Origin: Bugula neritina
Lineage: Eukaryota > Animalia > Bryozoa
Assembly (NCBI GenBank): GCA_964035545.1
Contig: OZ037765.1
Span: 35,426,080 to 35,490,079 of the forward strand
DNA length: 64,000 nt
Reading direction: 5' to 3'
Shown here: positions 1 through 63,872 of the stretch, piece after piece
Position numbering within the stretch: position 1 is the stretch's first letter
How the letters are laid out: each line of letters opens with the position of its first letter
Position numbers and translations under genes: made by a program
Notes under the pieces: model-generated
Told to the model about the DNA's origin: nothing
Databases searched by the model: none
What the model saw: the letters and a program-made list of their open reading frames with translations, nothing else

Positions 1-21
1 TATTACATTACTTACACTTTC

Positions 22-845: not shown

Positions 846-981
846 TCAGTAGTAAATATTATTTGTGGTCTTTTGAAGCACATAATGGGAGTTATCATCT
901 CATCCCCCTGTATCGTGTGAGATATGAATGAAAATCAAAGTTAGAAGTTGTGTTCTCATATGGACCTTTCTCTCTCTGTAG

Positions 982-20570: not shown

Positions 20571-20663
<93 letters not shown>

Positions 20664-23600: not shown

Positions 23601-26600
23601 TACGTCTGTTAGATATATCTGTGGAGTACGTCTGCAGTGTAGAGTTGTCTCCTCGCAGGTTCTGACATCAAGGTGGAGTTGGTGAAGATGCTGGAGGCCC
23701 GACTAGACACGACTATTCTGGGAGAGATTGAGATGCTGCTGGCTAGGAACCCAAACTGTATGCTCACTCCACAGGATGTGCAGGTATTCCCTTGTATATC
23801 TACTGTGTGCTCACTCCACAGGATGTGCAGGTATTTCCTTGTATATCTACTGTATGCTCACTCCACAGGATGTGCAGGTATTCCCTTGTATATCAACTGT
23901 GTGCTCACTCCACAGGATGTGCAGGTATTCCCTTGTATCTCAACTGTGTCTCCTTTTATCTGTTCCACTAGTTTATAGTTTCTGCAGAATGCATCTGTTA
24001 TGTTGCCAATTTGTAGTTTCTGCAGAAGAAAGAGCCACCATCTGTCTCACTGAAGCTGAGTCTACCAGACGAGGTGCTGCACCACCAGATGGCGGTACTC
24101 AGTTATCTCCGTCAGAACCTCCTCATCCCGGACTTCCTGTTCCACCCGAAGTACCAGGACTCTGAGCACCGGTTCATGGACTACACGGAGTCAGTTCTGG
24201 GAGCCAGTCCTATGGCTGAGTCCAACACTTTCCTTTTCAACAAGTCTCCGTCCTATCAGAACGCAGGGAAGGGGGCCGGTCAGTCTATTACCATGTCTAT
24301 TACCATGTCTACTCTATATCTACTGTATATCTACTGTATATCTACTCTGTATCTACTCTGTATCTACTCTGTATCTACTGTATATCTACTGTATATCTAC
24401 TCTGTATATCTACTGTATATCTACTGTATATCTACTGTATATCTACTCTGTATACCTACTCTGTATATCTACTGTATGTCTACTGTATATCTACTCTGTA
24501 TATCTACTGTATATCTACTCTGTACACCTACTGTATATCTACTACATATATACTGTATATCTACTCTATATCTACTCTATATCTACTCTGTACATCTACT
24601 GTATATCTACTCTGTATATCTACTCTGTATATCTACTCTGTATCTACTGTATATCTACTACATATATACTGTATATCTACTGTATATCTACTGTACACCT
24701 ACTGTATATCTATTGTATGTCTACTGTATGTTACCATATATCTACTGTATATTACCCTCAGGACTGGCTGTGATATACCTCCAGCTGGTAGACAGTATGA
24801 ATCATCCTAAGAACATTCTAGACTGTCCGAAGGCTGATATGGACGGCTGGAAGAAGCTGAATGTTTCCTCGTTCACCAGGTGATGTGTCCGTGCGTCTTA
24901 TGACATATCTGCTGTAGAATACACTCTGATATGTACTGTAGAATACACTCTGATATGTACTGTAGAATACACTCTGATATATGCTGTAGAATACACTCTG
25001 ATATGTGCTGTAGAATACACTCTGATATATGCTGTAGAATACACTCTGATATGTACTGTAGAATACACTCTGATATGTGCTGTAGAATACACTCTGATAT
25101 GTGCTGTAGAATACACTCTGATATGTACTGTAGAATACACTCTGATATATGCTGTAGAATACACTCTGATATGTGCTGTAGAATACACTCTGATATATAC
25201 TGTAGAATACACTCTGATATATACTGTAGAATACACTCTGATATATACTGTAGAATACACTCTGACGTCTGCTGCACAGTATACAGAGTGTAATGTATAT
25301 TATTATATAGCTCTATGATTGATAAACTGCTGCCTCTTGTAGACTGACTCGAGTCACCAAAGTGTCCCCTGATGACTCATCCACCTGTATGAGTACGGCA
25401 GCGTTCATCAGGTTCAGGTAGATCAGCTGATACAGCTGCGTTATTTTATAAGCAACAACACGCGTTATTGTTTTTATTTTTACTTTCAATGTTAATTATT
25501 TTCATTAATATAACATGTTACATAATTCTCTCTGAATAGAGTCTATACTTCGTACTATTAAAACTGTGTTTAGCTTGTCTTCCCAATTCCTTAGCATTTG
25601 GTTGAGGGGTGACATAGACGTCCCCTCACTGGAGAGTAAACTGAGCAGGTGCGTGCAGCACTCCCTCTCTGACTTTGTCTGTGAGTTCTACGCCCTTACG
25701 GCTCCTCTCTGCGCCGTCCCTCCTGAACTCCTCTGTGATGCTCAGACCACAGGCCAGATTTTCTCACTTCCTGCCAAAGGTTTGTGTCACCAGAGGGCGT
25801 TGCTATGACTACTTAGCCAACCTGAACAGCCCCGAATGTCTTGCTCTATTGTCACTGTTGTTTATCTGAAGGCAATCTGACTCCGAAGAACGCGGGCAGC
25901 AAACACCCTCCTCTCACAAAAGCCAAGTCCACCACTGGCAGCGCCTTCTCCTTCAGTTCAGATCACGTCAGCATGAGAGAACAACTCTCCTCGCCAACTC
26001 TCTCGGTATGTCTGTCTGTGTGTCTCTTGGTATGTCTGTCTGTCCGCTCTCGGTATATCTGTCTGTGTGTCTCTCGGTATGTCTGTCTGTCTGTCTGTCT
26101 CTCGGTATGTCCGTCTGTCTGTCTGTGTGTCTCTCGGTATGTCTGTCTGTCTGTCTCTTGGTATATCTGTCCGTCTGTGTGTCTGTCTCTCGGTATATCT
26201 GTCTGTCTGTCTCTCGGTATGTCTGTCTGTGTGTCTCTCGGTATGTCTGTCTGTCTGTCGGTATGTTTACTGTATTGTACCCTGTACTCTGCGTTTACTC
26301 AACAGATTGCAGAGAGTTTAGGGGACGGCACCAGAACCCCCCTGCAGGTGGATGTAGAGAAATACCTGTTTGGGGAGAAAGGTCACTTGTTACCTTTTTA
26401 TACAGAGACGCTGATAGCCTGGTTTGAGTTCTGTACTCAGTTAGGTTAGTATATACAGTATTCTGATAGTATTATAGACTGGTTTGAGTTCTGTACTCAG
26501 TTAGGTTAGTATATACAGTATTCTGATAGTATTATAGACTGGTTTGAGTTCTGTACTCAGTTAGGTTAGTATATACAGTATTCTGATAGTATTATAGACT

Positions 26601-29600
26601 GGTTTGAGTTCTGTACTCAGTTAGGTTAGTATATACAGTATTCTGATAGTATTATAGACTGGTTTGAGTTCTGTACTCAGTTAGGTTAGTATATACAGTA
26701 TTCTGATAGTATTATAGACTGGTTTGAGTTCTGTACTCAGTTAGGTTAGTATATACAGTATTCTGATAGTATTATAGACTGGTTTGAGTTCTGTACTCAG
26801 TTAGGTTAGTATATACAGTATTCTGATAGTATTATAGACTGGTTTGAGTTCTGTACTCAGTTAGGTTAGTATATACAGTATTCTGATAGTATTATAGACT
26901 GGTTTGAGTTCTGTACTCAGTTAGGTTAGTATATACAGTATTCTGATAGTATTATAGACTGGTTTGAGTTCTGTACTCAGTTAGGTTAGTATATACAGTA
27001 TTCTGATAGTATTATAGACTGGTTTGAGTTCTGTACTCAGTTAGGTTAGTATATACAGTATTCTGATAGTATTATAGACTGGTTTGAGTTCTGTACTCAG
27101 TTAGGTTAGTATATACAGTATTCTGATAGTATTATAGACTGGTTTGAGTTCTGTACTCAGTTAGGTTAGTATATACATTATTCTGATAGTATTATAGACT
27201 GGTTTGAGTTCTGTACTCAGTTAGGTTAGTATATACAGTATTCTGATAGTATTATAGACTGGTTTGAGTTCTGTACTCAGTTAGGTTAGTATATACAGTA
27301 TTCTGATAGTATTATAGACTGGTTTGAGTTCTGTACTCAGTTAGGTTAGTATATACAGTATTCTGATAGTATTATAGACTGGTTTGAGTTCTGTACTCAG
27401 TTAGGTTAGTATATACAGTATTCTGATAGTATTATAGACTGGTTTGAGTTCTGTACTCAGTTAGGTTAGTATATACAGTATTCTGATAGTATTATAGACT
27501 GGTCGTACTAACAGGTGTACCTGCTGTAACCAAGTCGCCGTGTGGTCTCCTCAATGGATGTGTGGTGGAGTCCATCATGAAGGAAATTGAATCTGTAGTC
27601 AGCGAACTGCCTGGCGTCAGCGTTCAGCCATTCAAACTAACTCACGGCCAGTATCTGCCCTACAGCACGTCGAGAAATGCTGAAACTGTATGTATTCTAT
27701 AGTATATTATATAATATATTACACACTATAGTATATTATATAATATATTACACACTATAGTATATTATATAATATATTACACACTATAGTATACTATATA
27801 ATATACTACACACTATAGTGTAATATATAACATCTGTTGATAGGAACCAGGCGAACCAGAAGAGCCGACACATCTGGACACTCCCTTCTCCCAACTCTCA
27901 GCTGGTCACATAATGACGGTGAGAAACAGGCAGCTCTGGATAGACAGTGTCATGGGGAAACAGGACGATGATGGGGGGCCTATGCTCACCCCCCAACCCA
28001 ACTCTCTGCCCAGAGGTAGGTCTGCCTTAGCTCGTGTTGATAGTCGTTAGCATGGAAACATAATATCATGTCGATATTAGTTGATAGGAAGAGAGAGCAA
28101 CCTATAGTATCATTCTATTACATCTGTATACAGTGTATCTACCTTGCTGTCACCTACACTATGTACATCTATATACAGTGTATCTACCTTGCTGTCACCT
28201 ACACTATGTACATCTATATACAGTGTATCTACCTTGCTGTCACCTACACTGTGTACATCTATATACAGTGTATCTACCTTGCTGTCACCTACACTGTGTA
28301 CGTACATGTACATCTATATGCAATGTATCTACCTTGCTGTCACCTACACTATGTACATCTGTATACAGTGTATCTACCTTGCTGTCACCTACACTATGTA
28401 CATCTATATACAGTGTATCTACCTTGCTGTCACCTACACTATGTACATCTATATACAGTGTATCTACCTTGCTGTCACCTACACTGTGTACGTACATGTA
28501 CATCTATATGCAATGTATCTACCTTGCTGTCACCTACACTATGTACATCTGTATACAATGTATCTACCTTGCTGTCACCTACACTATGTACATCTATATA
28601 CAGTGTATCTACCTTGCTGTCACCTACACTATGTACATCTATATACAGTGTATCTACCTTGCTGTCACCTACACTGTGTACGTACATGTACATCTCCTAT
28701 TCTAATACTTCAGTCTCTAAGAATAACCAGAAGTTCCCACCTGTCTACGTCGGAGTGGAAACATCCCCCAGCCTTACCAGCTCTCTCCCTCACTTCTCAC
28801 TGGACAGGCAGCTTCTACCTCGGCAGCAGTTCCTTCTCCTTGTCATCAGGGTGAGACTGGCAGCTTCTTGTAGCTGTACTTTAGTTATACTATTCACTCT
28901 GTATACTCCGTATACTCTGTATACTCTGTATACTCTGTATACTCTGTATACTCTGTATACTCTGTATACTCTGTATACTCTGTACACTCTGTACACTCTG
29001 TATACTCTGTATACTCTGTACACTCTGTATACTCTACTCTACTCTGTATACTCTGTACACTCTGTATACTCTGTATACTCTGTATACTCTGTATACTCTG
29101 TATACTCTGTATACTCTGTCTACTCTGTATACTCTGTATACTCTGTCTACTCTGTCTACTCTGTATACTCTGTCTACTCTGTCTACTCTGTATACTCTGT
29201 ATACTCTGTATACTCTGTATACTCTGTATACTCTGTATACTCTGTACTCTGTATACTCTGTATACTCTGTATACTCTGTATACTCTACTCTGTATACTCT
29301 GTATACTCTGTATACTCTGTATACTCTGTATACTCTGTATACTCTGTATACTCTGTATACTCTGTATACTCTGTATACTCTGTGTACTCTGTACACTCTG
29401 TGTACTCTGTGTACTCTGTATACTCTGTATACTCTGTATACTCTGTATACTCTGTATACTCTGTATACTCTGTATACTCTGTATACTCTGTATACTCTAC
29501 TCTGTATACTCTGTATACTCTGTATACTCTGTATACTCTGTATACTCTGTATACTCTGTATACTCTGTATACTCTGTATACTCTGTATACTCTCTGTATA

Positions 29601-32600
29601 CTCTGTATACTCTGTATACTCTGTATACTCTGTATACTCTGTATACTCTGTATACTCTGTATACTCTGTATACTCTGTATACTCTGTATACTCTGTATAC
29701 TCTGTATACTCGGTATACTCTGTGTACTCTGCGTACTCTGCGTACTCTGCATACTCTCTCTTTCTCTCTCTAACAGAATGCTGAGCTCACCCTCTACTCC
29801 TACAACTTAGCAGACGGCAAGGACATGTCCTTCCAGGAGCACATAACTCAGAGTGTGAAGAAGGTTACTCGCTGGAACAACGCCAGATTCCATCTGCTCA
29901 ACTCGGTGGCCCACCAGAAGATGGGGCTTTTCCAACACGCCAGTATACAGGATGTGCCCAGAGAGAGGCACTGCACGGTAAGTTACCAGTTCTCAGTGGA
30001 GTAAGTATATAGTACGTAGAGTAAGTATACTGTACGTAGAGTAAGTATACTGTACCTATAGAGTAAGTATGCTGTAAGTATAGTATACTTACTCTACGTA
30101 CAGTATACTGTACATGTATGTAGTAAGTATACTGTACATATAGCAAGTGTACTGTACATATAGAGTAAGTATACTGTACATATAGTAAGTATACTGTACC
30201 TATAGAGTAAGTATACTGTACATATAGTAAGTATACTGTACGTATAGTATGTATGCTTACTCTCCTAAGAACTGTTAACTTACGTTGACAGGACAAGAAC
30301 CTCTCCACCTCCACCTGTGAAGATACTTGTCTACTTGTCAAGTCGTCTCGCCCGGCACAGGAAAAGCCGAGACACAAGTCCGCAGTCACTGCAGCTAGCA
30401 GTCGATTTAGACAGACCACGCCCACCCCAGGGCCAATCAGTGGCCTGGACAAGGTGTTCAGAGGGCTGAAGCCCACTCGGCCCATGCACCTCAGTAAGAC
30501 TGGGAAGGAGAGAGACCCCATCATACGGCATGGCAGTCAGTTACTGGAAACTCACAAGAATGAGATGAGAGGTGAGTCATACTATTGAGAGGTGAGTCAT
30601 ATTGTTGAGAGGTGAGTCATATTGTTGAGAGGTGAGTTATATTATTGAGAGGTGAGTCATATTATTGAGAGGTGAGTCATACTATTGAGAGGTGAGTCAT
30701 ACTATTGAGAGGTGAGTCATATTGTTGAGAGGTGAGTCATACTATTGAGAGGTGAGTTATATTATTGAGAGGTGAGTCATATTATTGAGAGGTGAGTCAT
30801 ATTATTGAGAGGTGAGTCATATTATTGAAAGGTGAGTCATACTATTGAGAGGTGAGTCATACTATATTGCTGGTTCATTCAGATGAGGAGAGGAGAAACA
30901 CCCTGGACAGTCTCTACACCAACTGGCTGGACAGACCCTCCACTGAGATCACCGAGGACCAGCTCAACGTCCTCAAACAGTCTTCTAGACTGGTGCATCA
31001 TGTGGTCACCCCACTTCTGTTCAGTCCCACGTGGAGGAACAAGGCTATCAATCTGCCTAAAACTGTGGAAGAACTTCGCAGGATAGAAGAGAGCAAGTTG
31101 GCAGTCATCGTGAGTGGATAGAACAGTTTACTCTGCTGGGGGCTCTCAGTGCCGTAATGTATGAACCCCTGTAACTACTGGTGTACACCACTGTTTATTT
31201 TTTTCTCTTTGAATTCCTCTTGTAGAAGCAGAGATCGAGGAACAACTCGGGCACAAGTGTGCGCAGTGCCAAAGGAGGTGAAGGTCGCTCAGGGGCCCGT
31301 GACTCCCCGACTAGTGCTGTGATAAAAGGCTACGAGGAGGAGACGTGGCATGAGGAGATGAGGAACGCCTTCGTCAGCAGTTACATCGACTACCTGAGGC
31401 AGACTCAGCAGCCTGAGCAAGCTGACAGATCTGAGCTGACGTCTCTTGATGAGCTGAGATTCAGCACCATCAAACTTCTCAGCAGACGACCCAACAAGAC
31501 GTACGTAACTACACTATATGCTATACACTATATGCTATACACTATATGCTATACACTATATGCTACACAGTAACTACACTATACAGTAACTATACTATAC
31601 AGTAACTATACTATACAGTAACTATACTATACAGTAACTATACTATACAGTAACTATACTATACAGTAACTATACTATACAGTAACTAAACTATACAGTA
31701 ACTATACTATACAGTAACTATACTATACAGTAACTATACTATACAGTAACTATACTATACAGTAACTACACTATACAGTAACTACACTATACAGTAACTA
31801 GACTATACAGTAACTACACTATACAGTAACTACACTATCCAGTAACTACACTATACAGTAACTACACTATACAGTAACTACACTATACAGTAACTATACT
31901 ATACAGTAACTATACTATACAGTAACTATACTATACAGTAACTATACTATACAGTAACTATACTATACAGTAACTATACTATACAGTAACTATACTATAC
32001 AGTAACTATACTATACAGTAACTAGACTATACAGTAACTAAACTATACAGTAACTAAACTATACAGTAATTACACTATACAGTAACTATACTATACAGTA
32101 ACTATACTATACAGTAACTTGGTAATACTGGTTCCTCTCCAGAGTTCCAGAGTTTCACCGCAAACACTCCTCAGGAGGTTCCGGCACCGAGCAGCTGGTC
32201 AGACGTCGCGCCACCGAGAGTCTGCAGATGAGCATGCCCGGTGGCATCTTCCTCATAGAGCTCTCCTTCCAGGAAGTCTATTTTGTTGTCAAACTGTACG
32301 TCTTCAGCTCTCCACTACTCTCTATTTATACACAGACCTACCACTCTCTGCACAAGGTAAGTGCATATCTCATACACGTCATGTGACACACACCTGTCAT
32401 GTGACGCGCACACACCTGTCATGTGACACACACCTGTCGTGTGACGCACACTTGTCATGTGACACACACACTTGTCATGTGACGCACACCTGTCTTGTGA
32501 CACACACTTGTCATGTGACGCACACTTGTCATGTGACACTCTCACCTGTCATGTGACGCACACTTGTCATGTGACGCACCCACTTGTCATCACTGAACCT

Positions 32601-46727: not shown

Positions 46728-49557
46728 TTATATTATAGAACATGAGTTCCATATTCTATATAACATGGTAGAGCCAACGGACTCTGGTTCTTTCTCTCCT
46801 TCTATCTGAGTAGCTCCTTGATGGATATCTGTACCAGAAACTCCGTTGTATCCAGGAAACAGGTAGAGTTTCCTTTCATGAGAGAGAGTGTCACTAGCAT
46901 CTACCAGCTGTCCAGTTAGAATGTTCTTCGTTCTCTTACAATATTTGCTGATTCTGTGTTGAACCTGTAATAATATTTTCTAACAGTATCTAGTATATAG
47001 AATATGTAACATGTTTTAACAATATTATATAATATATAGAATATGTAACATAATCTAACAGTATCTAGTATATAGAATATGTAACATACTCTAACAGTAT
47101 CTAGTATATAGAATATGTAACATATTCTAACAGCATCTAGTATATAGAATATGTAACATGTTTTAACAATATTATATAATATATAGAATATGTAACATAA
47201 TCTAACAGCATCTAGTATATAGAATATGTAACATGTTTTAACAATATTATATAATATATAGAATATGTAACATAATCTAACAGCATCTAGTATATAGAAT
47301 ATGTAACATACTCTAACAGTATCTAGTATATAGAATATGTAACATAATCTAACAGTATATAGTATATAGAATATGTAACATAATCTAACAGTATATAGTA
47401 TATAGAATATGTAACATAATCTAACAGTATATAGTATATATAATATGTAACATACTCTAACAGTATCTAGTATATAGAATATGTAACATACTCTAACAGT
47501 ATCTAGTATATAGAATATGTAACATAATCTAACAGTATCTAGTATATAGAATATGTAACATAATCTAACAGTATCTAGTATATAGAATATGTAACATACT
47601 CTAACAGCATCTAATATATAGAATATGTAACATAATCTAACAGTATATAGTATATAGAATATGTAACATAATCTAACAGCATCTAGTATATAGAATATGT
47701 AACATAATCTAACAGTATATAGTATATAGAATATGTAACATAATCTAACAGCATCTAGTATATAGAATATGTAACATGTTCTAACAATAGCTTCACAATA
47801 TCCCCAGCCTGTAAACTTTCATGCAGTTATAGCTTAGCCGATTAAAATTTCAATCATATACATGCTATTGGTTCACAGGAATATCAGTAACAAATACCAA
47901 AATGACTAACAACTGAAATATTAAAAACTAAAACTTAATCTCATATAATATTTCTTAAGCTTTTAGCTTTCAATTATTTTCCAAGTATCTGTTATGTTTT
48001 GATGAAACTTTTTGTATCATGTAACACATTTACCGCTTTGTAGATCTCATGCATATCACGATGACAGGCATGTCTGTAGAGAGTTCTGACCAGACATCTG
48101 ACTAGTAGAGAACCGTACACAGGATGTCTTATAGACACATAGGCTATAACAAAGTGAAAACTCTAATATACTATATATGGTACATCATCAGTACTCTCAG
48201 ATATGTACATATGTTCTTATGCTTTACCACCTAATTTATACAACTGATAGTATGCTATAGGCATATATATGAACCCACTGTAAATATTGCAACAACAAAA
48301 AATACTACTGAGGTAGTCACAAAGTGAATAGCTTGATCGATTTTTTTTACAAATTTACACTGTGTCACAAAACTCTATAGTTCCAAGGTAAACCAACATT
48401 AAAATCACATACAAAAGACTACTTTTGAAGAACAGTTAAGATACTCACAATCAAAGCTGGCTTTTATAACAAACAGGTTTTCACAGTGAAGTGTCTCAAT
48501 TCCATCTCCTTTATAATATCCACCAGAGAAGTACTTTGGAGGAGTGAATACTTCTGGTTGAGTCACACTCTCATCTTCATCACCAAATTCATTGTCTCCT
48601 CCTGTCTCTACATCCTTGTGTCCTTTCTTACCCAAATCTTTTCTACCTGTTTACCATGGAATATTGAAGCAGTTATTGTTAAGCAGCAGTTGAATAGTAC
48701 CAGTAAAAGTGCACTGTCTGTGACTGTATTTCAAATAAATACAACATATCAACTCAATAGAAACTCACCACCACTACAAGCTTGGATAACAACCAGTTTA
48801 GGTTTATCAGCAACCACTGGGTTCTGAGGAACAGATAGTACGTCATACAGGTCTGTCAGTTTCACCAACTTTCCATCTGAACCATAGACATGACCCTCAA
48901 CTCCATGAGATCCAATAAACAGGAAGAACATCCCATAGTCTGCATTCTTCACATCATTCACTTCTTGCTTTACTGTTTCCCACATCTCCTGTGGTTACAT
49001 TCAGTATAATGTGAAAACTTTGTCAGCAGCCAAGTGAAGAAAATAAATATCATTTAATGAATCATTCTGTTTGTTGCAAATTAGTCTGCATATTAAGAGA
49101 ATTGAGTTTTTCATAATATTTAGGACTTTTCTGATTTGAAGTATCCCTCATCAAATTCTTTCTTTTCCAGTAATTTGTTGTGAAATAACCACTGTATGCG
49201 TAAAATCTAAAGATGAGATTTTGCTAATTGAAGTTCATTTTGCATGTTTCCTACCAAGATATCATGATTGAGAAGGTTCAAATGAGACATTTTAATGTAA
49301 CCATGGTATGTGTAAAATAACAAAGTATACTATAATAAATATTTAGCTATCGTTTTTTTCATTTATAAAACACAATGTGTCAAAACCTGAGCAGAGAGGT
49401 CCTTTTTGGTTACAACATCAAACTGAAAGGAGTTCAACAAATGTTCTAAATTTTTAACATCTACATCAGAGCCCTGTCTATAATAATCTGGATGAGCTTT
49501 CACTTCTTTGTTGTTGATTAAAACAGCTCTGCCTCTTCTCCTAGTCATAGGAAACAC
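46728..49557 (-). CDS. caspase (peptidase C14) domain exons, p20 and p10
   Basis: MTRRRGRAVLINN..RQGSDVDVKNL; FIGSHG (catalytic His); KPKLVVIQACSG (catalytic Cys); p10 SYVSIRHPVYGSLLV; RKLYLFPG. Confidence 0.9.
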
Positions 49558-50028: not shown

Positions 50029-53000
50029 TCCGGGCATGCGTGGTGTTACGCTAGTTGGTTAAACTCGTGCTTGAGAATTTTAGTTCGATTTAAATAAATT
50101 ATATATTTGATTTGATTGCAAATTATATTTGATTGCTCATTCAAATCTTACAATATAACAATAACTAATTTGTTTTTATATTTTAAATAGCAAATAATTT
50201 GGTGATACAAGTTTTTGCAGTTTGAAAAGTTGAGTAAATACCTGATTTATTTTCACCTCTCTTTATAGCATTGTTTTCTTCTTTCAATTTGGTAACATTT
50301 GCTTTCAATTCCTTTATTTCAGACTCCTTCAAATGAACACCTGAATTCAATCAAAACAATTATACAATAAAGTGTATATTTGAAACATGCTGGAGCAAAA
50401 ATTTGTGATAAGCTCAAAAATTTGATAGTCTTTAATAATTGCTTAGCTAAATATTTAAGAAATTGAAGCATTTAAAAGACCTAATAAACCGGTAAAAACA
50501 ACTCTATTTGCAGCAATCTGACTTTGATCTCAATTTCATATTATTCTGATAACCAAATTTTGCTATTAAACTATTCCAACACTAACTTACATGGGTGAAC
50601 AAAAAGACTCCGAATCTTATCTCCCCCACAGCGAACTGTCACCATCTTCCTCTGGAACGCCTGATATGGTTTCTCAGTTTGAAAGTCATGACACCATTTG
50701 GGAGTTACCTGAACTTTAGGATTAGATTCACCTTTCAATATGCAGTGTGTACAACTAGACTTGTGAACCATTCTGCTGGCAGGCCAGGAACTTCGAATCT
50801 CCTTGGAGATTTTCCTGGTTATACTGACCATGTGCTCCCAGCAATCTGTGATTTTCTCTACTGCTCCGGACACTGTAACATCTGCCTTCCTTGAGAGGCC
50901 ATCATGGACAAGGCGCACCGAGATATCATCAGGAGATATTTTTACACCGTTTTTTCTAACAGTTAAAGAACTTGTTTCATCTGGGAACATATTTAGCACA
51001 ACAACACTCATCTGTTGGTAGACATATTGTGGAATTGAGAGACCTTTGAACATGATCTCAGCATGGAGAATGATGTCTTGATCAGTGGTAAAAGTGTTCT
51101 CTATGTAATCAGGGGAGTGGAAGGGTACAATAAAACAGCTCTTTGATTCCAGATCAACTGGTCCGTAAAGAATGCTGAATTTCTGCAGCAAAGTGACAGC
51201 AAGTTGATATGCATCTTCATCAATGAATGCTGTCTCAGCTTTGATTAAATATTCAAGAAGTTGGTTCCCCATGATTCCTGCCGACAAGAAAAATTCCATG
51301 AAATTATCAAACTGTTCTTTCTCAAGAAAAGCTCCGTTAGTCAGTAAAAGTGGTTCAAAATTTGCTTGCCGAGTCTGCCAGACTTTTTCATCGTGATTAA
51401 ACAAGACTGTGAGTAGTTTAGTAACTTCCTCAATCTTGTGAAAAATAATCTGGTTCAACTCTTCAATCTCCTTGTACCACAAGACTTTACCACAATCATG
51501 CATGTAGGTGAGGATTGTGGTGAGCTGATCAGGTGTGATACTTCCATCTACTTGCTGCACTGTGCGAAGTATCTCATCAAATGTACTGAATGCTGTTTGT
51601 AATCCTAAGACTTTCTCATTCACATCTTCCCACAGCTTTGGCAGCACTTTCACAAAATTTTGAGCTGAATTAAAAATGGCAGTTTTCATGACTTCGTATG
51701 TTTGATAATTATCTTCTTTTCCAACTGAGTAGATATCTTCTTGCAAGAACAGCTCTCTGTGTTGATAGAAGTGCTCTATCTTTGCTATGCTTTGGTCAAG
51801 TTGTTTCTCTTCTCTCATGATTTCATCTTTCAGTAGATCAGCTGTGCTGGTGAAAGCAGTAGTCAGCTTTGTGAAATTCTCCTCATCAAACTTGTCTTTG
51901 TGAGTAAACACAAGTTTTGGTGGTCCAATGCCAGGGTTTGCCACGTATAAATGAGCCAGCCAATCAAAAGCCAGTCTTCTCACAGCCTCTCTGTCTCCCT
52001 TTTCTCGCGCCAGCTGATCATACTGCTCCATGTTCACCACTACTATCTGGATGCAGTTCTGTTTAAGTGTTAACTGGTAAGTCATGTGGTACACTGGTTG
52101 TCCTCCCATGTCAATTAGTCTCAGAACCGTTTTATTTACTTTCAACTCTTCAACTTTAAAGACTTTAGTTGTTTCATCAACAACAGCCTCAGGTTCACGA
52201 TTTGTCAGCACTCTCTTTCTCTCTTCACTCTGCAATGTTCTGATGAGACTTGTCTTCCCTGCCATTGTGTTACCAATCACTGCAATGGTGACTAGTGGAA
52301 GACTTTTACCTTCACCTTTAGCAAGATCTCTGTAGTACTGTCTGATTGCTGGCAATCCTCTGGTGCAGACTTCATAAGGGGGAGTGGTTAGAAACGTGCA
52401 TCCATCAGCCTTTATCGTTTGCAACTCCTTCAAGTTGCAGACTGCCTCGGAAATTGAAGCTAACTTGTTTTTCTGAATATCCAAAGACTGCAGATTTTCT
52501 AAGTGTTTCAAACTGCAAGTTGGATAAAAAAAAGCACATAAATAGAATTAGATTCTTCCAACTGCAGCAGTTTCTAACAAATTAATCTGATCTCTATTCC
52601 TGATTAAATCTGCTGTTTTGTTGCAGATATTTTGGCCCTTCTAATATATTCTCACTTGAAGTAAGTTTACATATTAGTGCTTTGTTTAATTTTGTTCTTT
52701 CTAATAAACACTATTTTATAATACATTTCATTTATTTTTCAGCCGTGAAACAGGTGAAAACAGTATTTCGGTTTGCCAATGATTTTAACTGCATTTTTAT
52801 AAGTCACCATAAAGTTTAAATATTAACATACAATCATAAATATTGAGAGCCTACAAATGCATATTGGATTTGATGGATGTCAAAGCTGATATGGGAAATA
52901 TTTGTTTATTGCGCAATTGATGGGCTTAGCCTAGGGCCACACGGTGCGTATTTCCGCATGCAAAAACTGAAATCACAAGTAGCAAAGGTGCATGTCCACC

Positions 53001-56000
53001 GTAGCGTCAGTGATGCGTGATAAATAAAGCTTCTATTTTTAAATCGCACTCGCTTTCAATAAAACGAAATTTACTGCAATGTAGCACTAAAATAAAGAAA
53101 TTGGGCTCTCTGAATAACTAGCAGCCAATTAGGTGACGACGACAGAGACGATTCGCACTTGTCGCTCAGCATTCTGAACAACAAGTGCGAATGTTTTCTC
53201 AACGCGCACAGTGGACACCTTTGCTACTTGTGATTTCAATTTTCGCATGCGAAAATACGCACAGTGTGGCCCTAGGCTTATTCTAAGTTGTATATTATTC
53301 TTTAATGTAGCAATTAGTGCAGGTAACAGCATAATGACAATGAGTTTGCCTCTAGAGAAGAATGCAGATGCTACAACTATAACTGCTTCTGCACCAAGAA
53401 TGACTAGTCCCAATGAAAAGAACCAAGACTTCCACAGTCCACTTATTTCTAGAAAAAAAAACAACAGGCAACTCAATACAAGAGTAGGCTAAAGGAATAA
53501 ATGGGAAAGTGTTATTGGTCTACATGAGACTGGGGAGTGTAACTTTGAAAGAAAGCTGTTGCTAGCAACATGTGCTATAAGTACAGATTTGTATTCACCA
53601 GCTAGACGCCCTGCTAAATCTACGTCAACATAGTCAAATCCTACATTAGAGTTATAGCATACAAGCTTCTGTATCCATGGAATTAATCTATCTACAAAGG
53701 GTTTGCAGTAACATACAGAGTTAAAAAGGCTGCCTTGTTGCTGTTATACCACAAAAGGAGCTAGAAAGACTTTAAAATGAACTCAATGATCATAAAATTT
53801 AGATTTGAAATTGAACGGCACTCATTGCAAAAGTTGCGCAACTATATTTAGATGCATGAAATCATGAATTTTTTACTCAAACTGGATTTCGTACAAGCTT
53901 TACCAGTGAAATATTATAGTGTTAAACATCGCTGATTGACTGAGTTTTACTTGGTCTCTTCTTGACTCAGCAATGCTAAAAGAAAGATCTCCTATTTTGA
54001 CTATTTGAGTTTCCTTGACATATTGCATGCATTTAAAGAATTTTATAGCTTCATACATTGATACAAAGTTGTGTCACCAGCTACTTTATAGTTTTCATGA
54101 TACACTGAGGCTATATAGTGTCTTGCAGTACTTCATGGAGAGGCACAGAAAGCAAGTTAATTGGCAGCTATAAGCCATGCAGTAGTGTTCAACTAAACAC
54201 TGTGAGTATTTCTAAGTTCCAGCTTGCATGAAGGGCAAGTAATTGGTATTGGAATGCAAATTAAAAACTGATTTGGCAATAAGAAGTTATTACAACACAA
54301 CCTGGAAGAATACAATTTCTTGGAATGCAATTTCTTGGTAGAACCATTGTTTCAGTTTGCATCAAAACTCAACATTCGATTTAGTATTCAGTTTGTTTAA
54401 TATAGTTTCTCTTATCACACACACTTGTGAGGCTTTTTGCAATAAGCAACACACTTGTGAACAAATTAATTTTAATAAACTTTATGCAACTTTTTTCTCC
54501 TATGAAAGAGGTTGTATTCTGCTGACCATTGCAATCTCAGTCTAGTTTATGAAAGCTGATTTTAAATGTTTTTGAACTTTTCAAGAAATTTTTTCAACAA
54601 ACTAACTTTAAGATATTATTCTGTTAAAAATTTTTGATTCGAATGGAACGGAGAGAAAATTAGTCTTTCATATAGTGCATGTGTGGGGTGTTGGCCGAAA
54701 AATTAAAAATTTTATACATTTTTGAAACACAGTATTCAGCATATATTATAAAACTTTGGTTTTACTATTGGAACCTTAGTTTGAGTAACATAATATTCTC
54801 TACAACATGTACAAAACTTTTTGAAATACAAACTTAAGCACTATTTACAGCAAGTGCAGCAGCTCCATGGTTTTAATCGAATAATATAAAAAAATTGAAT
54901 TAAAGTAGTAATAGAGTTTCGTAACACAAATTTAAAAGCAAATTCTACAGAAAATACAGAACTATAAATGAGCAAGTATACCTGGAACACTAAATAATTA
55001 GCAATTCATATAAATTTGCTTTCACTAACCTCTCAGGTAGAGTTGGTAGTTTACAGTTACTAATATCCAACTGCTTTAGAGATGTCATTGATGTGACTAC
55101 ATCAGGTAATCCTTCACTGAAGTTATTCCATGATATATCAAGAGTCTCCAGATTCTTCAGATCAGACATGCTATAATAAACATATACTAGTTGAGACATA
55201 ATATATTCTAATATATGATTTAACATAATACAATAAAATATAATATACAATATAAAATTTGATCCAACATATTATATTAAAATATATTACAATACAATAT
55301 AACACAATATACCAAATATAAAATTTGATATAATATATTATATTAAAATTTAATATATTTTATCATAATATACTGTAATATATATAGTAAAACTATACTA
55401 TAGTTGAGATAGGCTGTATTATATTTTAATATAGAATAACATATATTATGATATACAATGATGTGACAGAGTATACAATATAAAATATTGGAGTACATAT
55501 TGTAAGATAATATAGCGCATTATAATAATTTAGTGTAATATAATATAATATAATACAATATACCACTTATAATAGCACTTTCAATTCCATGGAATGTTTG
55601 TAACAAGTAAAACTATATACAAACATATTATCTTATCTGTGATTATAATTGGATGTCTGATCAAAATTATTATAGAAATCAATATTTTTCTTGAAGGGAA
55701 CTGAAATTTCTAGATGAGCATTTTATATATAAAGTTGCTTTTACTAACCACTCAGGAAGAGTTGATAGTTTACACTCAATAATATTCAACTCTCTTAAAG
55801 ATGTCACCGGTGTGAATACATCAGGTAATCCTTTACTGAAGTTATTCCATGATATATTAAGAGTCTCCAGATTCTTCAGATTAGACAAGCTATAGTAAAC
55901 ATATACTAGTTGAGATATAAGTTATATTTTAATATGATATAACATAATACATACAATAAAATAGATAATAATACAATATAAAATTTGACAGTAATATAAT

Positions 56001-59000
56001 ATTATATTGAAATATAATATAATATAGCGTGTAAAGTTATCACTGAGCATAATTAATTCAAGCAGTAAAAGTAACATAGTGTAATGAATACGTAATAGTT
56101 AATCGGGCATTCAGCGTTGCGTTTAGCATAACGTTTCACTCAAATAGATTATCGCAGATTCCTGCCTGCAACGGCTGCTAGTTGTAAATTCATTAATTAT
56201 ATAACAGCACGCTCTCGCTCATTGGCTGTGGCTTTATGCTTTGGCAGCCCGGATGTTTCAGTGCAGGCGTTGACCCTACAGTTAGTAGAATAGCATCAGC
56301 TAGCAATGCAAGTTCATCACATCAATAACAATCAATTTTAAATGATGTAATTAATAAAATATAGATGAATTTAAATTGGAATTAACTTAAAGAGGCACAG
56401 GTTAGTTTTGTCTTTCAGTATTTGTAATAATTTGAAGCTTTCTTTAAGTATTTTTATCTATTTCAACTATAAGAATAACTATTTGGTTTATTAAACATGT
56501 TTATAAGTTTGACAATTTTTAGAATGCCAGTGTGGTCAGTGCATGATAGAATTCATGGCTATGTGTTTATTTCACAATAGATTTCTCATAAAATTACAAA
56601 TTCTTAAGGCAGGCTCTCCAGTGATTGATTAGTTTGTCACAAGATAGTATTCTAATTGGCAGTTAAAGCCTTATTTTTATACTTACAGCATTTTACTGCA
56701 GCTACTAATTAAAGTCAACATTGAATATAAGTTTTAATCTCTGTCTATATGAGCTATACATTCATTCTTACTAATTGTCTCAACATTTGTCTAATTGCAG
56801 TTATCATTTAATGTCATTTTTATTATAGTTTGATATTTTTTAGTAGACCTGTAATACCGTTTCATAGAAACAAACTCACTCTAGCTAGCCACTAAAAGAA
56901 GGCAAGAGGTGATTAAATTAATATCTGTAAATATGTTTGAATACTTTACAATTTCATAAATAATTTTCTGTTTGTTTCATTTTAAAAACCTGTTATATAA
57001 TTTCATTTATATTAATAACCTACTTTTACAAAACTTTTCTTACGGCAGTTGGAATAAATAAAAATAAAGTTACTAACACCAACACCAGTACAACTCATCT
57101 ATAGTTAGTGGCGACGCTACATAGCGTAATGTAATATAATACAAAATTATATATTATAATACAACATACTATAGTCAACATGTATATAATAGTGAAGATA
57201 TCCTATAATATTATATTATAATAGAGTATAATATATAATCATAATATAACGTAATGCAGTATAGTATATTAACATAAAATAGCATAATGCAGGGTAATAT
57301 AATATTATGCAATACACTAGGTAAAAAAGCACTCAAAATTCTAAGAAATATGTTTGTAACAAGTAAAACTATATACAAACATACTTTCTTTGCGATTATA
57401 ATTGGATGTCTGATCAAAATTATAGAAATCAATATTTTTTTGAAAAAAAACTGAAAATACTAAATTGACATTTCCTATATAAAGTTAATTTTACTAACCT
57501 CTCAGGTAGAGTTGATAGTTTACAGTTACTAATATCCAACTTCCTTAGAGATGTCATTGATGTGAATACATCAGGTATTCCTTCACTGAAGTTATTCCTT
57601 GACATATCAAGAGTCTCCAGATTCTTCAGATTAGACATGCTATAGTAAACGTACATAATACAGTATATTATACTAGCTGAGATATGATATATGCTAATAT
57701 AAACTAACACAAAACGATGAAATATAATATAGTACAATATAAAATTTGATTTAATATATTGTCAACTTGTGCTATTCACTAATTATATGGATATTTAAAA
57801 CTGAATGCTAATAGCCCGCCAATGTACAGTATTGAGTATATAGACAAAGTTTATTTAGTACGAATAATACAAAAGTGAAATAAAATACATAAGTGAGAAG
57901 AATTACATAACTTAACAATAACGATGCATGCAACTTAACTATTCAAATGCTACTCTCTAACTGCATTCTGCTGATCCAAGCTGCTAATAATTGTATGATC
58001 CTTTGCATTATCCTGATTGGTCTATCCTATCCAATACCATGGGAGATGGCAGAGTAGCGTAGGCTGGTATTAGACTAGGGAGTAGCTTAGCGTATCGTAG
58101 ATGATTGCAGCGCTAAAGTATTCGAGTGAGGTACAGGAGTTGTCACTTCTGATGCACCATGATTCACCGCACCCCCCTATCTATCATAAGGCATGGCTGC
58201 TGATTAACCAACATATCAGAAGTTTAAAAAATATGACAATAATGAACAACACAAAAATATGAGTCATTTTACTTAGTTTAGTACAGACTGGAAATCTCCA
58301 GTTTTTAGCTATTTTTCACACTCTAGCTGCTAATGACCATGGGTTTTTGCCCAAAACTAGTAAAACATCAACAAATACACCTTGACTACAGTCGCATGCT
58401 CTCGCAAGGGTGTCTTATAGTCACGCCTCAACTCTTGCAACTAAGCTTGTGTTTTTTTGACAGTGAGTCTGGAATAGGCCCTCACTGCCTCAAAGATGCT
58501 GTTAACGTTTGGGTCAATACCTTATTTTTTTTACCGTTCCCGTTAAACTAATCTGTAGCTGTATCAGAGCTCCACATCTTCTTCTCCACAAAAATCGAGA
58601 TGTTGTAAATGATATCTGTCCATAGGCAGCGCTGCGCCACCTATAACATCTTGTACAGCTACGAGTGCCTTTTCCTCAGGCTCTAGGCGAGGCACCTCCT
58701 CCTTGTCGCTAGCCATGCTCCTCTACTCCTTGGTAAGGGGCATCGATCTCAATTAGATCCCACTGCTGCTATCACTGTGGTGAATTTATGGAGATAAATC
58801 ACCTTGTGTGGGTTATTGAGAATCTAAGAGCATGTAGCGTTATGTGTGCAAGTGTGTGTGTCAGAGTTGTCAGTGATACTAATTTGTGTGCGTGCAATAA
58901 TCCAATACTAACTATAATGGCGATAATAATCCAAGCAAGAAAAGCTACATAATATAAGATTTACATTGGGTAAAAAGAAAAAAATACAATCTACAAGTAG

Positions 59001-61677
59001 CTACTAAACTAAGCCGGCTCTTCTAGAACACAACATGGGGCTGGTACAGGGCTAGTGTTTTATACCTGCGCAGCCTCCTCTGATGTAAAGTTAGTATAAA
59101 CAGCTATGTGATCGTTAGCCAATCAAACCGTTGGGGCATAATGAATGTGTAAACAATAGTGTGAATTGTCACTGATGTTGGGTGTTGTGATGTTTAGCCT
59201 CGGTTAAGCGCGTAGCAAATGAATGCACTGAAAACTTTTACAATATTTTCTCCTTTTTTTGGAAAACTGTGGTTCCATCGTGGTCACAGAGTTAATTAAT
59301 TCCTCTTAATTTGAGACCATGAGCTTCCTTTAAGCCTAAATAGAATGCTTTAATGCCCCTTCTGTCTGCTGCCATTTGAAGTTCTATTGCTTTTTCTTGC
59401 CACCATCGAGGTTTTATTTTTTGGCATACCTCTGAAGACTGCTTTGTGATTTTCAGTAGGTTTTCCTTTTCAATCTGGTATGACACTGGATGAAAGCTTG
59501 TCTTGCCTTGTTTCTATTCTCAATCAACTGTCGTAGGAATTCATCATGTTCATTTAACCAACATTAATTTTTTTGTCTTTGTTTACTAAGCACTTCACTA
59601 GCTGTTGAAAACACTGTTTTCTTGAAAAATTTATCTATGTCATCATTATTTGCATCCGAACACTTTATATTCTCATTCAATTCCTTTTCAAGTTGTTTTC
59701 TTTTTTTCGACTGTTCAGCATGCCGCAGTGTTTAGTTTAATTAATGGCTTAGATCCAGTTTTCTTGTGATGTAATTTTCTTTTAATCTTTATTTTTGATT
59801 TTAGCATTATATGATCTGTGCCACAATATACTCTTCTTACAGGTCAAGTATCTAAAACCACACTCAAATTTTTATGGGTCATAGTAGGAGCATATATTTG
59901 CTAATAAAAGTCGCGTAAAATAATTTTTGGAGAGAAAGCCTAAATGTCATGATTCAGTCATTTACAGGAGTTGGTTCTTCATCCAAGGTTGGCAGCAATC
60001 TCATTTCTGAATGCAAATCTCACCCTTGCTTCTCTTCTTTCATCAGCTGACTTTCCACTTCAGTAGAAAGTATAGCCATATTCTATTAAGGTATCACCAC
60101 CTGGAAATCTTGTGTCACTAAGTGCGGCACAAAGCCATATGTATCCATGGCCATGGCCACAAAAGCTGTCTGTCTCTCTAGACGCTGCAATTGTGATCAA
60201 TCCATCAGTGTTTGTACATACCACTCTGCTACATATAAGAGGACATTTCTTCTCTTTTCCATTCTGTCTCCTAGCACACTTTTTGCTTACTGCTGCAGGA
60301 GTGAGAACAGATCAGCTTGAACCTTGTTATTTCGAGCAACGTCCAAGTCAGCATGAACTTGTTTTTGACGTAGCATTTTATAGAAACTGCTTACAAAAGA
60401 TTTAAGGTATAACCTATAACTGGCTTTTTCATGACCAATAGCACACACTTGGACGAAAAAGCCTAGAAATGCTGACCCCTTCCTTATCTGTTGCAGTGAC
60501 TGCATGACCAAGAAATAAGTATGCTAATCCCTGCTCTTTGGAAATGTGTCACCTCACATTGACTGGCATGGTCCACCACAGACCTAAGAATGCCCATGCA
60601 GTCCCACTCACTAGTTAGCTTGGTCATTGACCACTCGACCCATGGAACACGTTGTACCGATTTTTATGGTTATCTGGTAGCAGGCATTATACTTGACCTG
60701 ATCTGAATTACTCGATAAAAATTTCATATAAACTTGCTTTGACTAACCTCTCAGGTAGAGTTTGTAGTTTACACTCAATAATATTCAACTCTCTTAGAGA
60801 TGTCATTGATGTGAATACATCAGGTAATCTTTTACTGAACTTATTGAATGACATGTCAAGAGTCTCCAGATTCTTCAGATTAGACATGCTATATTAAACA
60901 TATACTAGTTAAGATATAATATATTCTAATATGATTCAACATTATACAGTAAAATATAATATAATACAATATCAAATTCGATATAATATATTATATTAAG
61001 ATATGATGTAACATAATACAGTAAATAATAACATACAATATAAAGTTTGATCTAATATATTATATTAAAATATATTACAATACAATATAACACAAAATAC
61101 CAAATATAAAATTTGATATAACATATTATAATAAAATATAATATATTTTGTTATAATATATTGTAATATATATAGTAAAACTATACTATAGTTGAGATAT
61201 GCTGTATTATATTTTAATATAGAATAACATATATTATGATATACAATGATGTGACAGAGTATACAATATAAAATATCAGAGTACATATTGTAAGATAATA
61301 TAGCACATTATAATTATTCAGTGTAATATAATATAATATAATACAATATACCACTTATAATAGCACTTTCAATTCCATGAAATGTTTGTAACAAGTAAAA
61401 CTATATACAAACATATTATCTTATCTGTGATTATAATTGGATGTCTGATCAAAATTATTATAGAAATCAATATTTTTCTTGAAGGGAACTGAAATTGCTG
61501 GATGAACATTTTATATATAAAGTTGCTTTCACTAACCTCTTAGGTAGAGTTGATAGTTTACACTCAAAAATATTCAACTCTCTTAAAGATGTCATTGATG
61601 TGACTACATCAGGTAATCCTTTACTGAAGTTATTCCCTGATATATTAAGAATGTCCAGATTCTTCAGATTAGACATG
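46728..61677 (-). CDS. LRR-ROC-COR-caspase fusion protein (Roco-family GTPase with C-terminal C14 caspase); 5' end not resolved
   Basis: In-frame exon chain on -: 61677-61537, 60888-60748, 57639-57499, 55889-55749, 55170-55030 (LRR cassettes); 52512-50591 (LRR+ROC+COR); 50340-50257 or 50242 (coiled coil); 49866-49679 (acidic linker); 49557-49387, 48988-48769, 48646-48449, 48143-48034, 46964-46728 (caspase, TAA). All junctions are GT-AG with compatible phases. Confidence 0.8.
46977..47787. repeat. 36-bp minisatellite in the last caspase intron
   Basis: aacagtatctagtatatagaatatgtaacataatct units. Confidence 0.95.
49944..50024. repeat. (TA)n microsatellite
   Basis: Direct reading. Confidence 0.97.
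50591..52512 (-). CDS. exon encoding terminal LRRs, ROC GTPase and COR domain
   Basis: LRR cap LTTPPYEVCTRGLPAIRQYY, P-loop GNTMAGKTS, G3 DMGGQ, G4 THKD, and COR-type LTYMHDCGKVLWY. Acceptor ttgcag at 52513 and donor gtaagt at 50590. Confidence 0.9.
52929..53277. mobile_element. PIF/Harbinger-type (Tourist-like) MITE
   Basis: About 60-bp TIRs starting GCCTAGGGCCACAC, flanked by TTA on both sides (52926-28 and 53278-80). Confidence 0.85.
55030..55170 (-). CDS. 141-bp two-LRR cassette exon 5
   Basis: MSDLKNLETLDISWNNFSEGLPDVVTSMTSLKQLDISNCKLPTLPE. Confidence 0.85.
55749..55889 (-). CDS. 141-bp two-LRR cassette exon 4
   Basis: LSNLKNLETLNISWNNFSKGLPDVFTPVTSLRELNIIECKLSTLPE. Confidence 0.85.
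56030..57121. mobile_element. probable solo LTR in the LRR exon array
   Basis: TGTA...TACA termini, 5-bp TSD TAGCG (56025-29 and 57122-26), AATAAA near the right end. It interrupts the repeated intron sequence. Confidence 0.65.
57499..57639 (-). CDS. 141-bp two-LRR cassette exon 3
   Basis: MSNLKNLETLDMSRNNFSEGIPDVFTSMTSLRKLDISNCKLSTLPE. Confidence 0.85.
58261..58368. mobile_element. fragment of the 4734-5150 MITE family
   Basis: gagtcattttacttagtttagtac...gctgctaatga...gggtttttgccca matches the MITE arm. Confidence 0.65.
59230..60420 (-). mobile_element. degenerate RTE-like LINE fragment
   Basis: Interrupted frames include WWQEKAIELQMAADRRGIKAFYLGLKEAHG and endonuclease-like DTRFPGGDTLIEYGYTFY*SGK. 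Multiple stops. Confidence 0.65.
60748..60888 (-). CDS. 141-bp two-LRR cassette exon 2 (absent from ORF track)
   Basis: MSNLKNLETLDMSFNKFSKRLPDVFTSMTSLRELNIIECKLQTLPE; same phase-2 splice sites as the other cassettes. Confidence 0.85.
61537..61677 (-). CDS. 141-bp two-LRR cassette exon 1
   Basis: ag|C ATG TCT...CCT AAG AG|gttagt; MSNLKNLDILNISGNNFSKGLPDVVTSMTSLRELNIFECKLSTLPK. Confidence 0.85.
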
Positions 61678-62478: not shown

Positions 62479-63872
62479 ATGGTATTTGAAAAGCTGCCAA
62501 AAAGCCACTGCAACACCGGAGGAGCGAGTTGATTGAATTAAATTTCTAATTTAATCAAAAAATAACAATAGAACAAAATATAAAGGCAACAAAAACATAG
62601 CATTGGAATGTAACAAAACTTAACGGTAAGCAAAAATACTATTTGGCTTATCAGATATATTGCAAACCTCACTGTTAAATGTAGTGTAAAATGATTGTTT
62701 GGTTTGGCACCGAAACGAACCTAAAAGCGCACCTAGTCGACTGAGACAAGCAATGCAAGGTTCTGCACTGCATGAATCACCCGGCCTCTTTGCACCCTGT
62801 ATGAACCCCAACCCCTGAGCCAACTTTAAGTGTTTTGTATTTTACTGCAATTGTCTGCTCCTGTCGCTACATCTCCAACTTTCCCTCTGATCACTGGGCG
62901 TCACTATGATGATTTTCAACTTTCTGCTAACCCAATCCGCTAAATTGATATTGCTCTTAATTCACCACCACTCACTCGAGTTACCTTCGTAGCAATTTGA
63001 ATCTTTCCTATTTTAGCCTTGTAAAAATGTCTTGCAGTACTTGCTTGAGATTTATCATACACTGGATTTGTGGAAACTTTTTGTTGGTATGGATCTTGAG
63101 GAGTGACTTTTTTCAATTTTACTTCTGGTTCTTTCGGACAGCTTTTACACTTCCAAAAATAGGTTAAAACTTGAGCAGTATTTTCTTCACAATTCAGTAG
63201 TTTGTTGGACTCGTCTATTCCTACTGTGGAAGGAATGACAGGTTGGTTGCTGTCATCAGACTGGAGGTCATGCTCATCTGCTGAACTATCTGAAGTCTGC
63301 AGCAACAAATTTGTTGGATGCTCAGCGTCACCTTTGCTTTCCTCTTGCTTCACTTGCGAGAGACCTAACTGAGATCCAGATGGTTGGCTGGAACTTGTGC
63401 CAGACACTGACTGACTAACTTCACTACTCTGACCCAGTGTGGTATATTTAAGAGTGTTGCCATTAGCAAATCTTACGGAATCATATGGGCGCCATTATGC
63501 CGAGATTGGTATCGCGAGTTTATATAAGTTATAAAGGAAAAATTTTGCCACTTTTGTTATTTTATTTTTTTTCTATTTTATCTGTACATTTTTTTTAATT
63601 TTTTTTATTGGTAAAGTTTTTAAACACATTTTTAATGCACATAAAATTAAAAGAAAAATTAAAACTCAATCATGCACATAAATACAAAGCTATAAAGTTA
63701 AAGCTTCGCTGTGATTTTAATGTGAATATGAATTGAATAATGCTTGTAATAACCATTATACACAAAATACGTTACAGTTGCTATAAATGTAAGACTAGTT
63801 AATTGGATGCAAATAGGCACGGTAATACTACTTAATTTATGCTATTTTTGAATTTTGTATTAAATATTTGGC

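Follow-up and report, generated by a model that had tools for sequence, protein, structure and literature searches.

Five tandem exons in the genome of the bryozoan Bugula neritina each encode two leucine-rich repeats (LRRs), and at codons chosen in advance exons of this kind show replacement divergence far above that of introns. The five exons lie in a 64,000-nucleotide stretch of contig OZ037765.1 (assembly GCA_964035545.1, positions 35,426,080 to 35,490,079 of the forward strand), which we call the window. We consider it probable that they are tandem-duplicated germline sensor exons of an intact ROCO-caspase gene, in which the repeat framework has been kept or homogenised while exposed residues have been under diversifying selection.

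Cassette exons encoding paired LRRs

A preliminary description of this DNA proposed five LRR cassettes, and all five were recovered on the minus strand, each 141 nt long. They are cassettes C1 (61537–61677), C2 (60748–60888), C3 (57499–57639), C4 (55749–55889) and C5 (55030–55170), every one an open frame with AG/GT flanks. The reading pattern is the same in five of five, 1 base plus 46 codons plus 2 bases, giving identical phase at both ends (phase 1-1). All five are likewise preceded by a pyrimidine-rich tract and AG, and followed by GTTAGT. The two LRRs of each cassette are 24 and 23 residues long and follow the framework L7-x-x-L10-x-M/I12-x-x-N15 and L31-x-x-L34-x-M/I36-x-x-C39, and the Pfam LRR_1 model matches C1 with 25.5 bits (cut-off 20.6).

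C4 is a syntenic duplicate of C1, from which it differs at 12 of 141 positions, and C5 is a syntenic duplicate of C2, from which it differs at 17 (but at only 8 from C3). The intron joining C1 to C2 (60889–61536, minus strand) aligns to that joining C4 to C5 (55171–55748, minus strand). Thus C1–intron–C2 and C4–intron–C5 are the two copies of a tandem two-cassette duplicate. By sequence and composition, the intron between C2 and C3 (57640–60747, minus strand) holds an insert of roughly 2.9 kb with higher G+C, in which three open frames matched no Pfam family.

Because all cassettes share length and phase at both ends, blocks can be gained or lost without a break in the frame. Unequal crossing-over can therefore lengthen or shorten the array by one or two cassettes with the reading frame preserved, and the C1–C2/C4–C5 pair is one such block.

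A predicted LRR-Roc-COR-caspase gene

The next exon after C5 starts at position 52512, and its acceptor (AG at 52514–52513) and reading phase match those of the cassettes, so that the LRR frame continues into it. This large exon (50574–52512, minus strand, its 3′ limit set at the end of the open frame) encodes a last LRR followed by predicted Roc and COR domains. Roc (PF08477) is matched with 31.6 bits (cut-off 27) at residues 88–179. COR-A (PF16095) reaches 23.2 bits, under the cut-off of 35.3, at residues 303–387, which is the expected place after Roc; several homologues carry PF16095 in precomputed domain lists. Only Roc/small-GTPase families were matched as the switch, and Pfam gave no NACHT or NB-ARC match in the large exon.

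Farther along the minus strand, the open frame at 49366–49581 matches the N-terminal part of a caspase (Peptidase_C14, PF00656, 33.7 bits). The exon at 48767–48991 (PF00656, 43.2 bits) contains both the catalytic His (SHG) and the catalytic Cys (QACSG), and it aligns by tblastn to Bugula protein P0034. Protein searches and the fold prediction were made exon by exon rather than on a joined, spliced protein. Among named relatives, the best are proteins of the bryozoans Bugula neritina and Watersipora. Given the fit of acceptor and phase, together with the downstream matches to Roc, COR-A and Peptidase_C14, the cassettes are the LRR sensor arm of a predicted LRR-Roc-COR-caspase gene.

A large gene family

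The published B. neritina assembly tzBugNeri2.1 spans 216.00 Mb in 320 scaffolds plus the mitochondrion, with chromosome 1 at 35.64 Mb and chromosome 8 at 13.35 Mb (PMC11480708). The window lies near one end of chromosome 1, at a distance of about 150 kb. Genome-wide, at least 40 cassette copies were scored from 100 candidates, and at least 67 copies of the Roc-COR exon from 185 candidates; 64 of the 67 are free of stops. At 80% identity or above, the Roc-COR exon belongs to a subfamily of six members that adjoin arrays of 141-nt cassettes. Judged from these matches, the gene is a member of a large Bugula neritina family of predicted ROCO-caspase genes.

Across eight regions sampled on chromosomes 1 and 8 there are 70 cassette copies, of which 63 are intact by the definition used here (141 nt, AG/GT flanks, no stop). 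The arrays on chromosome 8 show a 1,840-bp periodicity that comprises two cassettes of alternating types.

Variable residues and the LRR register

The preliminary description had drawn attention to a patchwork of residue types among the five cassettes, and its observations were reproduced. From C1 to C5, the residue preceding the first LRR Asn (position 14) is G, F, R, W and W, and the second-LRR strand reads RELNIFE, RELNIIE, RKLDISN, RELNIIE and KQLDISN. The first-LRR type runs NIS, DMS, DMS, NIS and DIS, and it combines with the second-strand types as had been claimed. A recount of C1 against C2 again gave 12 differing codons, 11 with a replacement and 1 silent. The patchwork is real: of 55 pairs of informative sites in the exon, 22 fail the four-gamete test.

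The larger sample separates a fixed framework from a small set of variable positions. L7, N15, L31, C39 and L41 are invariant across 61–63 cassettes, and most framework residues are more than 90% conserved among the 63. At each of eight positions (11, 14, 33, 35, 37, 38, 40 and 42), between 7 and 12 different amino acids occur. In the first LRR, nearly all variation falls at motif positions 5 and 8, and the second LRR is variable at motif positions 3, 5, 7, 8, 10 and 12.

A profile of the cassettes aligns in canonical register to solved LRR structures (best E value 4e-27). This profile match, with the Leu/Asn(Cys) framework, indicates that the predicted repeats fit the canonical LRR class with its LxxLxLxxN/C register. 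An AlphaFold2 model of one 46-residue cassette, computed from the cassette alignment, has a pLDDT of 74.6 and strands at residues 9–13 and 33–37. A Foldseek search with this lone-cassette model, a very small query, returned no meaningful fold match. The canonical register and the modelled strands make residues 11, 33, 35 and 37 strand residues that alternate with buried L/M residues, and residues 14 and 38 come after the strand, directly ahead of Asn or Cys. In LRR proteins, strand x positions of this kind line the concave face. The variable residues are thus predicted, from sequence register and textbook LRR geometry, to lie on the concave face.

Diversifying selection at predicted concave positions

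Among C1–C5, the ten pairwise comparisons by the method of Nei and Gojobori (NG86) give ω values of 0.76 to 2.3. C3 and C5 differ by 8 replacement and 0 silent changes, and pooling the ten comparisons by hand yields a pN of 0.119 and a pS of 0.080, a ratio of about 1.5. For the selection tests, we used the 63 intact cassettes, which are paralogous exons rather than alleles. A class of codons was fixed before any rates were seen, namely the x positions of LxxLxLxxN/C (codons 8, 9, 11, 13, 14, 32, 33, 35, 37 and 38).

Likelihoods were computed on a FastTree topology with IQ-TREE branch lengths by using our own codon-likelihood code, which reproduced the IQ-TREE M0 likelihood; the site models were M1a/M2a and a two-class model. 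Under M0, whole-exon ω is 1.22 with κ of 2.7. M2a improves on M1a with a 2ΔlnL of 148, placing 17% of sites at an ω of 4.7, and this result persists when each LRR half is given its own tree (2ΔlnL of 19.5 and 94.2). With a shared synonymous scale, the maximum-likelihood ω is 3.28 for the predefined class and 0.79 elsewhere, and the likelihood-ratio statistic against ω = 1 is 85.6.

M2a selects nine sites (11, 14, 25, 33, 35, 37, 38, 40 and 42). Six of the nine are among the 10 of 46 codons that had been predefined (p = 0.0014), and the expected enrichment of variable sites on the predicted concave face is therefore present. Site 25, an F/V dimorphism, is probably not a selected site and instead appears to have been reshuffled by recombination.

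Recombination inflates likelihood-ratio tests of site models, and the cassettes are recombining paralogues; for this reason tree-free pairwise diversity was used as well. This measure gives a whole-exon πN/πS of 1.17, and the πN of the predefined class divided by the πS of the remaining codons is 3.35 (bootstrap confidence interval 2.6–4.6). The two approaches agree that ω exceeds 1 in the larger sample, with 1.17–1.22 for the whole exon and 3.3 at the predefined x positions. By this estimate, change at the predicted ligand-facing residues is about three times as fast as at silent sites, a pace like that of fast-evolving immune receptors.

These ratios could in principle arise through relaxed constraint only, if surface positions evolve at an ω near 1 and the apparent excess comes from silent divergence that homogenisation or splicing constraint has depressed. 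One result in keeping with that account is the minimum count of distinct variants, in which the replacement/silent ratio is 0.5–0.65 in every class, below 1 and thus without a replacement excess. The excess is one of variant frequency and recurrence, not of the number of variant types. Against relaxed constraint, however, linked sites of a 141-nt exon have a common genealogy, and yet πN/πS is 3.35 with a lower bound of 2.6. The comparison with introns, given below, bears on the same account.

Exon divergence measured against introns

An alignment of 18 units from the chromosome 8 arrays was tried as a neutral yardstick and gave an intron diversity of 0.33 and an exon diversity of 0.126. In these arrays, the hypervariable-codon diversity of 0.32 is about that of the introns (0.33), with framework third positions at 0.098, which is the pattern that relaxed constraint would produce. 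The array-wide intron figure, however, blends two old unit types, as the two-cassette periodicity of 1,840 bp reveals, and this yardstick was dropped and replaced by syntenic pairs.

The replacement consists of 11 independent syntenic cassette pairs within collinear duplications of 1.8–5.4 kb. Their introns (17,173 nt) have diverged to p = 0.070, and silent sites outside the 10 predefined codons stand at 0.076, with replacement sites outside these codons at 0.064. Replacement sites reach 0.27 in the 10 predefined codons and 0.36 in the six hypervariable codons within them. Silent sites behave neutrally in these pairs, and the variable codons evolve about four to five times faster. Because silent p equals intron p, silent sites are not depressed in the young syntenic duplicates, and replacement p is still 0.27–0.36. 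We therefore regard relaxed constraint only as improbable. Comparing exon replacement divergence with intron divergence had been put forward as a check on positive selection, and with an intron p of 0.070 its outcome favours selection. Together with an ω above 1 at the predefined sites, replacement divergence above the intron level gives the positive-selection reading strong support.

The duplicated block in the window behaves in the same manner. Between C1–intron–C2 and C4–intron–C5, the intron is 95.0% identical (29 mismatches in 578 nt) apart from one 70-nt indel, and the two exon pairs are 89.7% identical (29 differences in 282 nt; exon versus intron, one-sided Fisher p = 0.0037). The differences comprise 4 silent changes in about 61 sites and 24 replacements in about 215 sites. 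The earlier impression that the introns are at least as similar as the exons thus holds for this block, but most other cassette pairs depart from it, with flanks that are far more diverged.

The syntenic pairs also bear on the proposal that the cassettes represent old, fixed, position-specific types that gene duplicates have inherited, with no ongoing selection. The two-cassette higher-order repeat of alternating types on chromosome 8 is what such inheritance would leave behind. Recently duplicated syntenic cassettes, however, have a pN of 0.27 at the predefined face codons, where random pairs have 0.32. Furthermore, the youngest bin of pairs (flank p of 0.033, framework pS of 0.013) already shows a pN of 0.14 at the six hypervariable codons. 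Inheritance of old types is accordingly very unlikely to account for the diversity.

Probable gene conversion and mosaicism

The preliminary description coupled selection with gene conversion. Framework silent divergence stays at 0.08–0.11 throughout a range of flank divergence from 0.08 to 0.32, and only the youngest pairs (flank p of 0.033) show a low framework pS, 0.013. Even a slow clock would produce some rise; the flat relationship therefore fits exon homogenisation in copies whose introns have become too different to pair. In the window, the intron partner of C5 is C2, yet its exon is nearer to C3 (8 differences as against 17). C3 and C5 share a five-site tract at exon nucleotides 97–115, linked within 19 nt, although their flanks are unrelated. 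A comparison of 150-nt flanks among C1–C5 was set aside as evidence for mosaicism, being partly confounded by the 70-nt indel just upstream of C2.

Two results speak against such exchange. In a PHI-like test of the 141-nt alignment, incompatibility between sites did not increase with their distance (p of about 0.98), nearby sites being if anything more incompatible; because the hypervariable codons cluster, this test is uninformative here. Variable positions are nearly independent even within one LRR, with 4 of 78 position pairs associated at p ≤ 0.01. Given the null result and this near-independence, recurrent mutation under selection can account for some of the patchwork.

A stricter version of that explanation would have diversifying selection act through recurrent point mutation alone, with the patchwork arising as convergence at a few saturated sites and without any gene conversion. 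The non-significant PHI-like test and the near-independence of hypervariable positions agree with it, as does the fact that several changes are single-base steps (for example, N/D/Y/H at position 35). By contrast, point mutation alone is at odds with a framework silent divergence that does not grow with flank divergence and with five linked differences within 19 nt of C3 and C5 on unrelated flanks. Many hypervariable codons also show differences of two or three bases in duplicates with introns that are 5–7% diverged. On balance, we judge it unlikely that point mutation acted alone. Of the claim of gene conversion, the decoupling of exon and intron genealogies and the C3–C5 tract stand in favour, and the PHI-like test does not lend it significance. 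Exon-scale gene conversion is probable from these alignments, and it may be the agent that has both homogenised and shuffled the exons.

Proposed mode of evolution and action

These findings suggest a model in which, after duplication, cassettes retain their hydrophobic framework, apparently homogenised among cassettes by exon-scale gene conversion. Diversifying selection would then drive apart exposed residues on or beside the β-strands, at positions 11 and 14 of the first LRR and 33, 35, 37, 38, 40 and 42 of the second. The variable face presumably binds ligands, and we infer that binding would act via the Roc-COR switch on the fused caspase, making the protein a one-piece intracellular immune or self/non-self sensor. 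The domain architecture and family size suggest that its target may be a pathogen or an allorecognition cue, as the preliminary description had also proposed.

There is a slim chance that cassettes are used in combination, through alternative or mutually exclusive splicing or through haplotype-specific content, to produce a colony-specific ROCO-caspase repertoire that decides between fusion and rejection. If true, this combinatorial reading would amount to a death-effector allorecognition system in a bryozoan. The reading that we favour is that of germline sensor exons diversified by selection, and the known systems are compared with it below.

Relation to known LRR receptors

The predicted protein resembles animal ROCO proteins of the MFHAS1/MASL1 type in having N-terminal LRRs followed by Roc-COR. 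Indeed, its nearest named relatives beyond Bugula are annotated as ‘malignant fibrous histiocytoma-amplified sequence 1 homolog’ in Watersipora, Glandiceps and a shark, at 21–32% identity. MFHAS1 occurs as a single copy and is not known to carry a caspase, whereas the Bugula genome has at least 67 copies (from 185 candidates) with cassette exons and a predicted fused caspase.

The LRRs of NLR and plant R-genes belong to expanded, clustered families in which β-strand x positions are hypervariable with ω above 1, and their repeats are shaped by unequal crossing-over and gene conversion. The Bugula genes likewise form an expanded clustered family with hypervariable x positions and ω above 1. However, their predicted switch is a Roc GTPase in place of a STAND NTPase, and their predicted effector belongs to the same polypeptide instead of being recruited through CARD, PYD or TIR domains.

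Lamprey VLRs gain their diversity by somatic assembly of flanking cassettes that are not spliced. VLR chains are among the PDB matches of the cassette profile, and both systems use short LRR cassettes in which the framework is conserved and residues of the concave face (predicted for Bugula) vary. Unlike those of VLRs, the Bugula cassettes are ordinary exons with splice sites, ordered within the gene.

The closest published system is the LRR-ROCO family of brown algae, in which same-phase LRR exons duplicate and shuffle to yield candidate immune receptors (Zambounis et al. 2012, cited in Teng et al. 2024, PMC11378527). Each algal LRR is encoded by a 72-bp, phase-2 exon, PAML site models find four concave-side sites to be positively selected, and alternative splicing is reported (PMC11378527). 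Both systems have an LRR-Roc-COR architecture (predicted for Bugula), same-phase LRR exons and diversifying selection at concave-side positions, which in Bugula are predicted ones. The Bugula exon differs from the algal one in length (141 nt), phase (phase 1) and content (two LRRs), and also in having a first LRR that is mostly constant and a second that is hypervariable. The algal genes have no fused effector domain, whereas the Bugula gene, from an animal host, has a predicted C-terminal caspase with both His and Cys. A literature search turned up no paper in which ROCO proteins are mentioned alongside bryozoans or Bugula, and to our knowledge almost nothing has been described of the genetics of bryozoan immunity or allorecognition.

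Implications

Bugula has a very large gene family whose members are predicted to unite a recognition surface with a GTP switch and a caspase in one polypeptide. The predicted recognition surface bears the evolutionary signature of an arms-race receptor, which would make this protein a candidate one-piece sensor-executioner built on a Roc GTPase instead of a STAND NTPase. As an animal counterpart to the brown-algal LRR-ROCO genes, the family points to convergent use of exon-modular LRRs. Its cassette arrays, where a few hundred bases suffice to set framework, silent sites and introns side by side, provide a clean natural case for the interplay of exon duplication, conversion and selection.

Organization of cassette arrays and their introns

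The chromosome 8 cassette arrays (regions L042–L048, G000:C8 4.80–5.03 Mb) are built on a repeat unit of roughly 915 bp, and a higher-order repeat made of two cassettes of alternating type recurs every 1,840 bp. Entire arrays on this chromosome are also duplicated, with about 92% identity across 5.4 kb. Upstream of every cassette, the final 60–80 nt of the intron are near-invariant across arrays, such that diversity in this segment before the acceptor is 0.008–0.18, compared with approximately 0.35 in mid-intron. This pattern reflects either strong constraint on splicing signals or conversion tracts that extend beyond the exon edge.

The intron between the second and third cassettes of the window gene (C2 and C3; window 57640–60747, minus strand) carries an insert of about 2.9 kb that is richer in G+C, at around 38% versus around 28% in the surrounding sequence. 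Several short open frames lie on the minus strand of this insert, and a Pfam search with three of them returned no match. The insert is probably a decayed mobile element whose insertion split the array.

Elsewhere in the window, an intact open frame of 961 amino acids (12351–15233, minus strand) belongs to a LINE-type retrotransposon and combines an endonuclease/exonuclease/phosphatase domain with a reverse transcriptase (RVT_1, E = 1e-40). Long minisatellite arrays are unusually abundant, occupying 9243–12171 and many further stretches (for example, 1–3200, 20000–20700, 24900–25300, 28000–29800 and 46919–47818), and one array matches itself at shifts of roughly 66 nt across nearly 3 kb.

Sequences upstream of the window cassettes and cassette turnover

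Upstream of the first cassette, a Ser-rich open frame of 184 amino acids (window 62943–63494, minus strand) has no Pfam match, and could represent an N-terminal exon of the LRR-Roc-COR-caspase gene or noise. Two further cassettes are located upstream on the same strand, roughly 3 kb and 22 kb past the window end, and may or may not be part of this gene. The nearer (G000:C1:35492905–35493048) is 144 nt long, with one additional in-frame codon and intact splice sites, and the farther (G000:C1:35512263–35512403) has an AT donor instead of GT.

These two chromosome 1 copies are among the seven of 70 cassette copies that fail a strict test for an intact 141-nt exon (others include G000:C8:4807218, 4811877, 4851387 and 5022665, and C1:35333518). 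The remaining five are truly broken by a frameshift, stop or truncation. The presence of these seven failing copies thus indicates birth-and-death turnover of cassettes within arrays.
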